Positions 2,860-39,609 of a stretch of DNA of 64,000 bases are shown here, in pieces (the first letter of the stretch is position 1; every line of letters starts with the position of its first letter). The position numbers and the translations under genes were made by a program. This DNA is from Octopus sinensis (taxonomy: Eukaryota): positions 15,438,001 through 15,502,000 of the forward strand of contig NC_043000.1 in the NCBI RefSeq assembly GCF_006345805.1, given 5' to 3'. Below the pieces are notes generated by a model, which was not told where the DNA came from, ran no database searches, and worked only from the letters and a program-made list of their open reading frames with translations.

Positions 2860-2921
2860 TTAATCACAGAAATTAACAAACAAAAGTAGAATACAAAATG
2901 CAACTACAGAATATGTATAGG
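2860..2921 (-). CDS. Terminal exon, GPI-signal-like tail: AYTYSVVAFCILLLFVNFCD*
   Basis: Phase-1 acceptor gttcctttacag|CC, hydrophobic run ending in TAA; typical C-terminus of GPI-anchored Ly6 proteins. Confidence 0.75.
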
Positions 2922-3748
2922 CTGTAAAGGAACAATCCTACCATTTCTGGTTGCCAACAGAGAATACATAAATATATATGCATTTATATATGTATATATA
3001 TATATATGTGTGTGTATATATATACACACATGCTCAACTGGTTAAGGTCAAACAACTGACAAGCAAATCTGTGGCTGTGTGGTAAGTAGCTTGCTTACGG
3101 ACTACATGGTTCCGGGTTCAGTCCCACTGCATGGCACCTTGGGTAAGTGCTTTCTACTATAGCCTTGGGCCGACCAAAGCCTTGTGAGTGGATTTGGTAG
3201 ACGGAAACTGAAAGAAGCCTGTTGTATATATGTATATATGTGTATGTGTGTGTATATGTTTGTGTCTGTGTTTGTCCCCCACACAACATCGCTTGACAAC
3301 TGATGCTGGTGTGTTTATATCTCCATAACTTAGTGGTTTGGTAAAAGAGACTGATAGAATAGGTACTAGGCTTACAAAGAATAAGTCCTGGGGTCGATTT
3401 TTCGACTAAAGGCAGTGCTCCAGCATGGCCACAGTCACATGACTGAAACAAGTAAAAGAGTAAAAGATATATATATATATATATGTGTGTGTGTCTGTGT
3501 TTGTCCCCCTAGCATTGCTTGACAACCGATGCTGGTGTGTTTACATCCCCGTCACTTAGCGGTTCGGCAAAAGAGACCGATAGAATAAGTACTGGGCTTA
3601 CAAAGAATAAGTCCCGGGGTCGATTTGCTCGACTAAAGGCGGTGCTCCAGCATGGCCGCAGTCAAATGACTGAAACAAGTAAAAGAGAGAAAAGAGTAAA
3701 GAGTATATATATATATATATATATATATATATATATATATATATATTA

Positions 3749-6700
3749 AGTTCTGCAATGCAAATGACCTTATGGTTTGCAATACCAACAATACCAACTT
3801 CAGGAAACCCACCTCTCACCTAGTCACCTACCGTTCTGGTAGACACACTAGTCAGATTGACTACATCCTCGCCAGAAAGAGGGAAAGAGGGCTGCTTATA
3901 AATGCCAAAACCTTTCCAGGCGAAGAATGTACTCCTCAACATAGATTAGTAGTTAGTGACATCAGGATCAGAGCTAAATGGTTGCCCAGAAGAAGACCAG
4001 CTTGGAGGAGAAGGATCTGGAAGTTTAAAGATCCTGCAAATGGACAGAGATTTAGAGACATACTACTCGAAGCCTTTGACGAAATAGAAGGGGATATAGC
4101 TTCACTTAATGTGGAAGACAACTGGAGATTCCTACGGGACAATCTGCTGACAGCCACTAACCAGATCCGTGAATGGAGCAAAGTCCCATCTCGACCCAGA
4201 GTAACGTGGTGGTGGAACAATGTGGTTGACAGGGCTATTAGACAAAAGAAACAGGCTTGGAGGGACTGGAAGAATGGTGGTAGCAGGGAATTGTATCAGA
4301 CAGCCAGAAGGGAAGCTAGGAGACAGGTTTCTTTAGCCAGAGGGGAAGCGGATAAGAAAAAATTTGCCAATGTTCTGCGCCGTGAGGATGAAAGACTTGA
4401 GGTATTTCGTGTTGCAAGACAGTGTGTGAGAGAGAATCGTGATGTGGTAGGAGATAAATGTGTCCGCATGGATGATGGTTCACTTGCGCTAAATGAGGAT
4501 GCAAAGAGAGAGGTTTGGAGATGCCACTATGAAAGGTTGCTGAATAAAGAAAATGAATGGGATAAAGAGAGTCAGCCAAATGTCAACCCAACAGAGGGAC
4601 CAGCCATCCAAGTTGACAATTCTTTGATAGTTAAAGCAATTAGAAGCATGAAGACAGGGAAAGCCCCAGGCCCATCAGGAATTACTGCAGAGATGCTCAA
4701 AATATCTGGCAGTGTCGGCTATAACCTAGTCACCCGTATAGTTAACCAGGTGATACACGAAGGAGTCATACCCAATGACTGGTGTAGCAGCATACTAGTC
4801 AACTGCTACAAAGGTAAAGGAGACGCCCTAGATACAAATAATTACAGAGGTATCAAGCTGTTGGATCAGGTAATGAAGGTTACAGAGAGGGTCATAGCCT
4901 AACTGGTTAGGGAGAGAGTCAACTTGGACGAGATGCAGTTTGGTTTCATGCCAGGGAAAAGCACCACTGATGCCATATTTCTGGTGAGACAGCTGCAGGA
5001 GAAATACCTAGCCAAAGATAAGCCCCTGTACCTGGCTTTCGTTGACATGGAGAAAGCTTTTGACAGGGTCCCCCGATCCCTTATCTGGTGGTCAATGAGG
5101 AAACTAGGGATAGATGAATGGCTGGTGAGGGCTGTGCAAGCCATGTACAGGGATGCCGTAAGTAAGGTTAGGGTTAGCAACATGTACACAGAAGAATTCC
5201 GGGTAGAGGTTGGGGTCCACCAGGGTTCAGTACTCAGCCCCCTCCTATTTATCATAGTCCTCCAGGCAATTACAGAGGAATTCAAGACAGGTTGCCCCTG
5301 GGAGCTCCTATATGCTGACGACCTTGCTCTAATTGCTGAGTCACTATCAGAACTGGAGGAGAAGTTCCAGGTGTGGAAGGAGGGTCTAGAATCGAGGGGC
5401 CTTAGAGTCAACCTAGCTAAAACCAAAGTACTAATAAGTAGGAAGGTAGACAATCCACAAATGTCTTCAGGAAGATGGCCCTGCTCGATCTGTAGAAAAG
5501 GTGTAGGTAGAAACTCTATAAGATGTACCCAGTGTAAGCTATGGACACATAAGAGGTGCAGCAATGTCAAAGGAAGGCTAACTGGGAAGATAGTTTTTGT
5601 ATGTGGCAGATGCTCGGGAGCATTAACCTCTGAAAATCTGCAGAAAACAACTTCCGTCACTTTCCAGGGGGAAAAACTAGAAGTAGTTGATAGCTTCCGT
5701 TATCTTGGTGACCAAGTCAGTAGTGAGGGTGGGTGTGCTGAAAGTGTAACGGCTAGAGTAAGAATAGCCTGGGCAAAGTTTAGGGAGCTCTTACCTCTGC
5801 TGGTGACTAAAGGTCTCTCACTCAGAGTAAAAGGCAGACTATGATGCATGTGTACAAACAGCCATGCTACATGGCAGTGAAACATGGGCCGTGACTGCTG
5901 AGGACATGCGTAAGCTCGCGAGAAATGAAGCCAGTATGCTCCGATGGATGTGTAATGTCAGTGTGCATGCTCGACAGAGCGTTAGTACCCTGAGAGAAAT
6001 GTTGGACCTAAGGAGCATCAGTTGTGGTGTGCAAGAGAGACGATTGCGCTGGTATGGTCATGTGGCGAGAATGGATGAAGATAGGTGTGTGAAAAAGTGC
6101 CAATCCCTAGCAGTGGAGGGAACCCGTAAAAGAGGTAGACCCAGGAAAACTTGGGACAAGGTGGTGAAGCACGACCTTCGAACTTTAGGTCTCACTGAGG
6201 AAATGACCTGCGACCGAGACCTTTGGAAATATGCTGTGTGTGAAAAGACCAGGCAGGACAAGTGAGTCCAGCCCACTTATGCATGCCTTTCCTCCCTTGG
6301 ACACACAAAGACCTGTTGAGGCAAGCGAAGTCGATATCGAACCTCATCCGACGACAGGCACCTATGCCAACTCCCCTTTGCTTGTGAAGACCTGTTGGGG
6401 CAAGTGAAATCGAAATTGAAATCGGAATCGAAATTGAACCAATCCTATGACTGGCACCCGGCAGATGCCAGGACCCCTGGACTGGAGATACGTAAAAAGC
6501 ACTATCCGAATCGTGGCCGATGCCAGCGCGGCCTCGACTGGCTTCCGTGTCGGTTGCAAGTAAAAAGCACCATCCGAATCATGGCCGAAGCCAGTGCTGC
6601 CTCGACTGGCTTCCGTGCAGGTGGCACGTAAAATGCACCAATCCGACTGTGGCCGATGCCAGCCTCGCCTGGCTCCAGTGCAGGTGGCATGTAAAAAGCA

Positions 6701-6872
6701 CCCACTACACTCATGGAGTGGTTGGCGTTAGGAAGGGCATCCAGCTGTAGAAACATTGCCAGATAAGACCGGAGCCTGGTGCAGCCTCCTGGCTTCCCAG
6801 ATCCCCGGTCGAACCGTCCAACCCATGCTAGCATGGAGAACGGACGTTAAACGATGATGATGATGATGATGA
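3749..6872 (+). mobile_element. 5'-truncated RTE-clade LINE: end of APE endonuclease, RT, PHD-like Zn finger, 3' UTR and (GAT)n tail
   Basis: SQIDYIL (APE end), KAPGPSG, NYRGIKLL, QFGFMPGKSTTDAIF, GVHQGSVLSPLLF, LLYADDL, FRYLG, RRLRWYGHVARM, RGRPRKTW; starts and ends in TA-rich microsatellite. Confidence 0.95.
3772..6265 (+). pseudogene. Disabled RTE ORF
   Basis: In-frame TAA at 4900-4902 (frame continues into 4924-5844) and a frameshift at about 5840 before the 5864-6265 segment. Confidence 0.9.
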
Positions 6873-6978
6873 TATATATACATACATACATACATACATA
6901 CATATTCACATTTGTATATGTATGCGTATGTTTGTGAGTGTGTATGTGTGTGTGAGCAAACATTTGAGAGAGTCTTAC

Positions 6979-38198: not shown

Positions 38199-38764
38199 CT
38201 ATTATATATATATACATATATATATATATATACATGTGTGTGTGTGTGTGTGTGTGTGTGTATGTGTGTATATGTATGTATATATATATATATGTGTGTG
38301 TCTTTGTGTCTGTGTTTGTTTCCCCCTTACCACTTGACAACCAGTGTTGGTGTGTTTACATCCCCTAACTTAGCAGTTCGACAAAAGAGACCAATGAATA
38401 AATACTAGGCCTAAGAAATAAATCTTAAGGTCGATTTGTTCAACTAAAAAACCCTTCAAAGTGATGCCCCAGCACGTCCACAGTCAAACAATTAAAAGAA
38501 TACATACACACACACAAACATACAACGGGCTTCTTTCAGTTTCCATCCACCAAATCCACTCACAGGGTTTTGGTCAGCCCACTGCTATAGTAGAAGACCC
38601 TTATTGAAGGTACCACACAGTGGGACTGAACTCGGAACTATGTGGTTGGGATGCAAGGTTCTTACCATACAGCCACACATGTGCCTATAGAAGCTATTTT
38701 TGTGAAAAATTCATATATTACATGTGAATATACAGATATTATTGTGGAAAAATCTAGATATAGA

Positions 38765-39195
38765 TATGGCTGTGTGGTAAGTAGCTTGTTTACCAACCAC
38801 ATGGTTCCGGGTTCAGTCCCACTGCGTGGCACCTTGGGCAAGTGTCTTCTACTATAGCCTCGGGCCGACCAAAGCCTTGTGAGTGGATTTGGTAGACGGA
38901 AACTGAAAGAAGCCTGTCGTATATATGTATATATATATATATATATATATATATAATATATATATATGTATGTGTGTGTGTGTGTTTGTGTGTCCGTGTT
39001 TGTCCCCCTAGCATTGCTTGACAACCGATGCTGGTGTGTTTACGTCCCTGTCACTTAGCGGTTCAGCAAAAGAGACCGATAGAATAAGTACTGGGCTTAC
39101 AAAGAATAAGTCCCGGGGTCGATTTGCTCGACTAAAGGCGGTGCTCCAGCATGGCCGCAGTCGAATGACTGAAATAAGTAAAAGAGTAAAAGAGA
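38765..39195 (+). mobile_element. SINE family A, full-length copy
   Basis: Complete head, internal (TA)n/(TG)n and tail; highly similar to the other copies. Confidence 0.85.
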
Positions 39196-39474
39196 GAGAG
39201 TATATATCACACACATATGAAGGAAGACTGCATCCTTCAAAACTTCCATGCTTCCTGAGATTCGCCAACACTACACCTGATTTTCTCCCCTCCATACACA
39301 CACAGGCATGTATCTGACTCATACATTGTTCGCTTTCCAGACATTTCTACATTACTGCATATACTTTATATGCACTTTTGACAAGTTGTGGTGCACCTGA
39401 GCACTGTATACAATAATTTCATTATTATTATTATTTTATATGTTGATTTTATTTAATTTGGAACAGGTACTTAC

Positions 39475-39609
39475 TTCCATCTTTCTCTTTGCGAATAAAA
39501 CATGTTTTTGTGACATTGCACTCAACTGTTGCTACAGCTTCAGGAAATGGTGAATCAACAGAACTGGCACAGTAAGGGTTCCAACTGGTGCAGTCGTAAC
39601 ATATTGTGG
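39475..39609 (-). CDS. LU (Ly6/uPAR three-finger) domain 1, first-half exon: xTICYDCTSWNPYCASSVDSPFPEAVATVECNVTKTCFIRKEKDG
   Basis: Acceptor tttctctttactatag|CC, donor GGAA|gtaagt, 135 nt, phase 1-1, open; 5 Cys with CxxC start typical of LU domains; homologous to exon 8851-8982 (CFIRK motif). Confidence 0.88.

Follow-up and report, generated by a model that had tools for sequence, protein, structure and literature searches.

The 64-kb window of Octopus sinensis DNA analysed here (the whole stretch of 64,000 nucleotides, an exact reverse-complement piece of chromosome CM016862.1) contains, on its minus strand between positions 6979 and 39609, exons 2-8 of the nine-exon RefSeq gene LOC115210196. 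The product of this gene, XP_029634523.1 (411 aa), is annotated as an 'uncharacterized protein'. Based on profile, structure-prediction and orthologue comparisons, it carries two Quiver-type Ly6/uPAR three-finger (LU) domains, LU1 and LU2, separated by a long conserved linker, and it is probably secreted and not membrane-anchored. We hold the gene identity, the two-domain architecture and the secretion, taken jointly, with high confidence; this estimate leaves the function of the protein aside.

Ly6/uPAR proteins have mostly been studied as single-domain, glycosylphosphatidylinositol (GPI)-anchored modulators in vertebrates and insects; to our knowledge, almost nothing is known about them in molluscs. 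LOC115210196 is genuine and already annotated, though uncharacterised, and it encodes a new architectural variant of this well-known family. It defines a small family of its own (only 11 of 1.84 billion representative proteins matched at E ≤ 1e-30 in a profile search) with an unusual conserved layout, in which a long tether with conserved tryptophan motifs joins two three-finger modules. The fusion of such modules to the chitin-binding Peritrophin-A domain, CBM_14, in relatives from two other phyla provides a testable functional lead, and the family offers a comparative handle on the use of three-finger domains outside the nervous and immune systems.

Gene structure and domain architecture

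The original prediction, made from the nucleotide sequence alone, chained eight minus-strand segments of the window into a hidden gene of 37 kb. Each of these segments is indeed flanked by an AG acceptor and, except for the last, which ends in a stop codon, by a GT donor; together they add up to 1193 nt in one open frame encoding 396 aa plus the stop. Seven of them, from 39475-39609 to 6979-7167, are base-exact to annotated exons 2-8 (Table 1), and exon finding from sequence alone was accurate to that extent. Their translation is identical to residues 25-400 of XP_029634523.1, and an independent spliced mapping of this protein onto the locus (window position = 76699 - position in the extracted CM016862.1 locus) returned the same boundaries for exons 2-8 to the base. 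XP_029634523.1 was found by a protein search with the spliced product, in the same 90% cluster as the O. bimaculoides RefSeq protein, which is 96% identical to that product; gastropod matches cover both domains and the linker. The gene is not hidden, since it is already annotated, and it is larger than 37 kb: it spans 66.8 kb on CM016862.1, with exons 1 and 9 outside the window, where the original prediction could see neither. For the same reason, an exact peptide search and a sensitive tblastn of the window recovered neither the signal-peptide exon nor the annotated last exon. The exon-9 region is 96.7% identical to that of O. bimaculoides over 369 nt. The seven window exons all lie in unique DNA (0% intra-window repeat).

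As predicted, the translation contains two cysteine-rich blocks of 10 Cys each, both ending in CN, with a stretch of ~170 residues between them and the sequons NVT, NQT and NKS. Their assignment to the Ly6/three-finger family agreed with both of the comparisons that had been proposed for it, a search with profile hidden Markov models and a structure prediction. The Pfam family QVR (PF17064, Quiver family u-PAR/Ly-6-like) matched the whole protein in two stretches with 44.0 bits, against a cutoff of 27.3; LU1 alone reached 34.3 bits and LU2 alone 24.3 bits, just below the cutoff, while no Pfam family matched the linker. All 10 Cys are invariant across 15 mollusc LU domains; the octopus domains start with CxxC, and each domain ends in C-N. 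The full-length AlphaFold model was poor, with a predicted local distance difference test (pLDDT) value of 47, two visible beta-rich domains, a linker pLDDT below 35 and a weak fold search; we therefore built a domain-only AF2 model of LU2 from the 15 mollusc LU domains (pLDDT 91; predicted template-modelling score, pTM, 0.84). In a Foldseek search of the PDB with this model, the top 37 matches were all three-finger proteins, including C4.4A, the TGF-beta type II receptor (TbRII) ectodomain, uPAR, CD59, GPIHBP1, AMHR2 and CD177, with probabilities up to 0.98 and TM values of 0.4-0.58; only noise followed. On this profile and model evidence, the prediction that both blocks are Ly6/three-finger domains is sound, and they are of the Quiver type.

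The linker (~170 aa) is acidic (net charge -6), contains 8 Trp and is predicted to be disordered. Between O. sinensis and O. bimaculoides, codon differences number 28 synonymous to 11 non-synonymous overall, and 13 to 1 in the LU exons. In the linker exons, they number 13 to 8, where 80% non-synonymous would be expected at random (P = 3e-5), and the sole indel in a linker exon measures 9 nt. These comparisons indicate that the seven window exons are under purifying selection and that the linker is real coding sequence. The peptide of the linker micro-exon, exon 4, is recognisable in Argonauta as DDYHQYNDHPVNN.

The same order of signal peptide, LU1, long linker and LU2 was found in proteins of Haliotis, Patella, Littorina, Pomacea and Babylonia, and partial models of Argonauta, Batillaria and Gigantopelta cover the linker-LU2 part. 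The octopod linker motif PWWWWYVHWSTERP aligns with gastropod LW(F/W/Y)WHADSDRP, and EGWGNSKTTKHSEHW aligns with gastropod WGxGWGHIKPWW, so that octopods and gastropods have in common the motifs WWxH/WxS/D-T/S-E/D-RP and GWG...WW. Abalone has three core LU exons of 135, 132 and 189 nt, the lengths found in octopus, with the same phase-1 junctions. The LU1-linker-LU2 architecture is conserved in octopods and gastropods. The proposal that LU1 and LU2 belong to one gene and not two stands, as LU1, linker and LU2 are joined in RefSeq and in independent models of O. sinensis, O. bimaculoides, O. vulgaris, Argonauta and six gastropods, and the linker is conserved and under selection; the window search found no signal-peptide exon between the domains. 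C-mannosylation of the Trp motif as W-x-x-W was considered and rejected, the spacing not being conserved across species.

The common phase-1 split of the two domains had suggested an internal duplication. We found the split after CF(I/L/V)(R/K)K, in phase 1, in both domains of octopus and abalone alike, and LU1 and LU2 are each other's paralogues. Between octopus and gastropods, identity is 56-62% for LU1 and 54-63% for LU2, whereas LU1 and LU2 are only 36-47% identical to each other. By these values, the duplication is older than the cephalopod-gastropod split.

Relatives and proposed function

The profile search, which was exhaustive, returned only 81 matches at E ≤ 0.001. The best non-mollusc matches were Lingula anatina LOC106166306 and Owenia fusiformis CAH1788342 (Owenia-A), each scoring ~171 bits over two stretches; a second Owenia protein and Capitella CAPTEDRAFT_205745 came next. 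According to Pfam, the Lingula and Owenia-A proteins are QVR-QVR-CBM_14, whereas Capitella and one metagenomic relative are QVR-CBM_14; the CBM_14 scores in the Lingula, Owenia, Capitella and metagenomic relatives are well above the Pfam cutoff. When the relatives with CBM_14 served as seeds of a further search, the sole addition was a Paralvinella protein, which also has CBM_14; no bivalve or squid member was identified, and most of the other weak matches are unnamed metagenomic or Sequence Read Archive (SRA) fragments. The Lingula and Owenia QVR-QVR-CBM_14 proteins have the same order of signal peptide, LU, acidic linker and LU as the octopus protein, and the Lingula, Owenia and Capitella LU domains have the motifs RGC(A/F)DGW, Y(V/I)GC, EWCFC and LCNG in common with those of molluscs. 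Unlike the mollusc proteins, these relatives end in CBM_14 and do not have the Trp-rich linker motifs. The Lingula linker contains, shortly before the second LU domain (residues ~270-290), the sequence ...DISDRNNRP..., which faintly resembles the mollusc (H/W)(A/S)(D/T)(S/E)(D)RP without its Trp, a likeness too weak to count as homology.

Long Ser/Thr-rich, mucin-like tails are present in the gastropod orthologues. After this tail, six gastropod proteins end in a short conserved (Y/F/L)(R/K/N)A(L/F)xG(K) (for example, NYRALNG, NYRALFG, LFKALLGK and NYKAFGG), whose Gly or Gly-Lys at the very end recalls an amidation signal; octopod proteins have neither the tail nor the terminal motif. Nothing on this family came up in the literature, whether searched by the identifiers of its members from octopus, gastropods, brachiopods and annelids or for connections to mollusc Ly6 proteins or shell matrix.

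Among known systems, Drosophila Quiver/Sleepless has, like the octopus protein, a ten-Cys CxxC...CN domain, a QVR score above the cutoff, a predicted three-finger fold and a signal peptide; QVR proteins of this kind are single-domain and GPI-anchored, whereas the octopus protein has two domains and a conserved 170-aa linker and lacks an anchor signal. Vertebrate C4.4A/LYPD3, TEX101, Haldisin, uPAR and CD177 also have several LU domains per chain. C4.4A (6ion_A) is the best structural match of the LU2 model, and it has a Ser/Thr-rich region after its LU domains, as do the gastropod orthologues. In the vertebrate proteins, the LU domains are packed directly together and GPI-anchored, whereas the octopus domains are separated by a long disordered linker in a chain that appears to be secreted. 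As the identity to the vertebrate proteins is only 11-18%, their layout and that of octopus likely arose by independent duplications. Snake three-finger toxins and Lynx1/SLURP have the same superfold as the octopus domains, with no specific sequence relationship.

In insects, the organisation of cuticular chitin requires Retroactive, a Ly6-type 10-Cys protein that acts via Knickkopf trafficking and whose aromatic residues have been proposed to contact chitin (PMC3561106). It resembles the octopus domains in being a 10-Cys three-finger module, in this case one that works in a chitin matrix (PMC3561106). Unlike the octopus protein, Retroactive is single-domain with a C-terminal hydrophobic segment and acts through Knickkopf.

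In the mechanism we propose, the N-terminal signal peptide would direct export into the extracellular space, where two rigid, disulfide-locked three-finger modules would be held apart by a flexible acidic tether whose Trp motifs may serve as a third conserved contact site. The protein would thereby act as a soluble or matrix-associated extracellular bivalent binder. Our preferred function, put forward tentatively as possible and not as probable, is that it organises or attaches to an apical chitin-containing extracellular matrix. A matrix role is the best-supported guess because the closest non-mollusc relatives are coupled to CBM_14, because of insect Retroactive and because of the mucin-like gastropod tails.

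Several observations weigh against this account. The Pfam scan found no CBM_14 match in the octopus or gastropod proteins, and a neighbour-joining tree of 15 LU domains gave no one-to-one orthology of LU1 and LU2 with the brachiopod and annelid domains; because of these two results, the matrix role is kept tentative, and from the tree it follows that the two-domain layout common to molluscs and the brachiopod and annelid proteins could be convergent. We know of no function for the linker Trp motifs. The exon junctions rest on annotation, conservation and selection tests and not on transcript reads, and there may be a minor isoform with another 3′ exon. Finally, the Foldseek E-values of the LU2 model are modest (7e-3 to 0.4), though the match list is uniformly three-finger and such values are usual for this small, divergent fold.

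A broader and somewhat doubtful extension of the matrix role would place the octopus gene in a lophotrochozoan family, so far undescribed, of secreted double three-finger proteins that ancestrally organised chitin-based extracellular matrix. In this scenario, QVR-QVR-CBM_14 would be the ancestral form, still kept by brachiopods and annelids, and molluscs would have swapped the chitin-binding module for Trp-rich linker motifs, with a mucin-like tail added in gastropods. If true, the protein would take part in building structures such as the radula, beak, sucker lining or shell, and a connection between Ly6 proteins and chitin, so far limited to insect Retroactive, would extend across protostomes. 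Conservation of the gene in non-venomous grazing gastropods (abalone, limpet) led us to set aside a role as a venom component or toxin.

Secretion also fits a diffusible neuromodulator or ligand for channels or receptors, of the SLURP-1/2 type, that would have no part in matrix. Membership of the QVR family and the secreted architecture agree with this alternative, and soluble Ly6 proteins acting on nicotinic acetylcholine receptors (nAChRs) provide a precedent. The nearest out-group relatives, however, carry chitin-binding domains, and the mucin-like tails of gastropods are more typical of matrix or surface-coat proteins; a neuromodulator is therefore rather unlikely in our view.

We give less weight still to a role in epithelial barrier or septate-junction assembly, as in Drosophila Boudin (which is secreted), Crooked and Coiled. 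These proteins have the same Ly6/QVR-type 10-Cys domain class, and Boudin is diffusible (PMC3058042; also cited within PMC3561106). All three are single-domain, the octopus protein shows no specific sequence affinity to them beyond the family level, and the CBM_14 fusions of its relatives point to matrix, which together make a junction role clearly improbable.

The hydrophobic tail and the C-terminus

In the original prediction, the protein ended in a hydrophobic tail encoded by the eighth segment, 2860-2921, and was pictured as a GPI- or tail-anchored, bivalent bridge, of the Lynx1/Quiver type, between nAChR or K+-channel sites. The tail open reading frame (ORF) does have an AG acceptor and is in phase, with a 12-mer of Kyte-Doolittle (KD) hydropathy 3.1 after small residues; the domains do fall in the Pfam family whose founding member, Quiver, modulates Shaker and nAChRs. 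The remaining evidence speaks against the tail as a real exon. It is used in none of the models of three Octopus species (O. sinensis, the older O. bimaculoides model and O. vulgaris), all of which use the ENQDPQK exon. The whole of it falls within a tandem duplication of 1.5 kb whose copies are 97.7% identical and, because of this, it is present twice, with an identical copy at 1326-1387. No counterpart was detected in the Argonauta or O. bimaculoides loci, although in O. bimaculoides a 2.2-kb N-gap covers its likely position. Additionally, the 7 kb downstream of exon 8 contain 150 AG-preceded phase-1 ORFs of 12-40 aa ending in a stop codon, 18 of which carry a 12-residue window with KD ≥ 2.0; an ORF like the tail is expected by chance in this AT-rich intron.

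Comparison with other molluscs and with the annotated model leads to the same view. In Argonauta hians, an in-frame TAA stands one base before the conserved exon-8 donor AG/GTAAGA (~23050-23070 of L003), so that the protein ends 13 residues after the last CN; any 3′ exon after exon 8 would be untranslated there. The C-termini of all six gastropod proteins examined are hydrophilic. In octopus, the annotated C-terminus (...KNKSENQDPQKSKVQ) is also hydrophilic, its best 12-mer having a KD of only 0.22, with no GPI-attachment signal. By hydropathy inspection, the signal peptide encoded by exon 1, MPYSVVRGFLILLTCSFVTVFSKA, has a hydrophobic core of KD 2.5 followed by SKA/T, and after it no 19-mer exceeds KD 0.72, which leaves no segment resembling a transmembrane or GPI signal. 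From these features, the protein is probably secreted.

We therefore rejected 2860-2921 as an exon, and its use even in a minor isoform seems highly improbable. Neither the hydrophobic tail nor the membrane tethering built on it is supported, and the same applies to the proposed nicotinic-receptor and K+-channel targets; the idea of bivalency is reasonable as geometry. An anchored bridge is accordingly very unlikely, and the CBM_14 partners of the nearest relatives suggest a different direction. The alternative in which LU1 and LU2 come from separate single-domain Ly6 genes, mis-chained via chance ORFs in repeats, draws on introns that are 52% repeat and on the fact that all LU exons are phase 1-1, so that phase compatibility alone proves little, but it is effectively excluded by linker exons of unique, conserved sequence under purifying selection, by linker motifs common to gastropods, by orthologues that are single LU1-linker-LU2 proteins and by the lack of any signal-peptide-like exon found between the domains.

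Other octopus gene models and repeats in the window

Table 1. Exons, introns and repeats of the locus, in window positions (syn, synonymous, and non-syn, non-synonymous codon differences between octopus species)
Feature	Position	Strand	Remarks
Exon 1, signal peptide MPYSVVRGFLILLTCSFVTVFSK	window-equivalent 66629-66698	-	outside the window, ~2.7 kb beyond its high end
Part of intron 1	39610-64000	-	from spliced mapping
Exon 2, first half of LU1 (TICYDC...CFIRKEKDG)	39475-39609	-	135 nt, phase 1 at both ends; exact match to XP_029634523.1; 3 syn / 0 non-syn
Exon 3, second half of LU1 (ISRGCADWW...LCNGQSMADVKKLN)	29918-30082	-	165 nt; exact match to XP_029634523.1; 3 syn / 0 non-syn
Exon 4, linker micro-exon (EIHEFNQDAENP)	24169-24207	-	39 nt; exact match to XP_029634523.1
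Exon 5, acidic linker with Trp motif PWWWWYVHWSTERP and poly-Asn run	12291-12547	-	257 nt; exact match to XP_029634523.1; 4 syn / 3 non-syn and an in-frame 9-nt indel against O. bimaculoides
Exon 6, linker with second conserved motif EGWGNSKTTKHSEHW	10446-10659	-	214 nt; exact match to XP_029634523.1; 8 syn / 5 non-syn
Exon 7, first half of LU2 (FFCWDCYDD...CFIRKDNG)	8851-8982	-	132 nt, phase 1 at both ends; exact match; 7 syn / 1 non-syn
Exon 8, second half of LU2 and short spacer (TYRGCADGW...LCNYQSMESLRMSHLPLATKNKS)	6979-7167	-	189 nt; exact match
Last intron, almost complete	1-6978	-	from spliced mapping
Exon 9, annotated terminal exon (NQDPQKSKVQ, then stop)	~51 nt beyond window position 1	-	
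Eighth segment of the original prediction (AYTYSVVAFCILLLFVNFCD, then stop)	2860-2921	-	rejected; likely chance ORF
Tandem duplication, ~1.5 kb	30-1534 and 1537-3068		97.7% identical, 300-nt stretches at 100%; both tail-ORF copies inside
Non-LTR retrotransposon remnant	3772-6265	+	in last intron, antisense to the gene; three broken ORFs of 376, 306 and 133 aa
Dispersed repeats, first group	7282-7513, 10732-10963, 27403-27559, 40339-40570, 41949-42580		
Dispersed repeats, second group	12702-13051, 22920-23075, 28399-28932, 31541-31890, 36320-37121		
Repeat copies like the first exon of O. bimaculoides isoform X2	31480-31539, 9591-9650, 61749-61808, 14210-14278, 10906-10983		

The models of this gene in O. 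bimaculoides and O. vulgaris look defective. In the O. bimaculoides locus (CM046604.1, near 132.92 Mb), a run of N occupies positions 54622-56827 (L002) where exon 8 is expected, and exon 8 is missing there, probably because of this assembly gap. In RefSeq, isoforms X1 and X2 of LOC106878805 finish with read-through sequence of intron 7 (...DNGGNNNHYYRLFLLTTI), and the older model jumps to the last exon; these ends are probably explained by the gap and would be annotation artefacts, not truncated isoforms. Isoform X2 also has an alternative first exon (MELELRKQRQEILLSILLSVLTIQPVCHLL) that resembles, with 60-75% at the protein level, a dispersed repeat of the window (Table 1) and probably represents either an exonised repeat or an artefact of annotation. 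In O. vulgaris, CAI9722074.1 (713 aa) fuses the gene to the neighbouring JNK1/MAPK8-associated membrane protein (JAMP) gene via an alternative donor in the last exon (...ENQDPQK/KNHFL...), downstream of window position 1 (beyond position 76784 of L001, the extracted CM016862.1 locus); it is either a read-through transcript or a mis-merge. In this model, JAMP follows directly downstream, on the same strand.

Within 2860-39609, 52% of the sequence matches other parts of the window, and no tRNA or other RNA family was found in the window with Rfam at gathering thresholds. The tandem duplication at 30-3068 is rich in microsatellites, with arrays of (TGAT)n, (AT)n and (TA)n, and a partial third start (91%) follows at 3071-3232; the duplication is either of recent origin or an artefact of the assembly. 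The middle ORF of the non-long-terminal-repeat (non-LTR) retrotransposon remnant matches RVT_1 with 96.7 bits and, weakly, a PHD-like zinc finger. DNA ~78% identical to this remnant lies, at a non-collinear position, ~4 kb downstream of the O. bimaculoides terminal exon (61536-62767 of L002) and may be another copy of the element.

Large arrays occupy intron positions 29095-29578, 32178-32647, 36097-37029 and 34707-35713. The first of these is a (CA)n array of ~480 nt, 340 nt downstream of exon 3, and the arrays include a ~470-nt (AG)n/(TG)n tract, 2.1 copies (99%) of a 452-nt unit and a direct repeat of 707 nt whose 300-nt core is 100% identical. The introns also contain two families of dispersed short repeats, scattered much as short interspersed nuclear elements (SINEs) are, with 5-9 copies each that are 60-90% identical and often occur as adjacent dimers of 183-184 nt.

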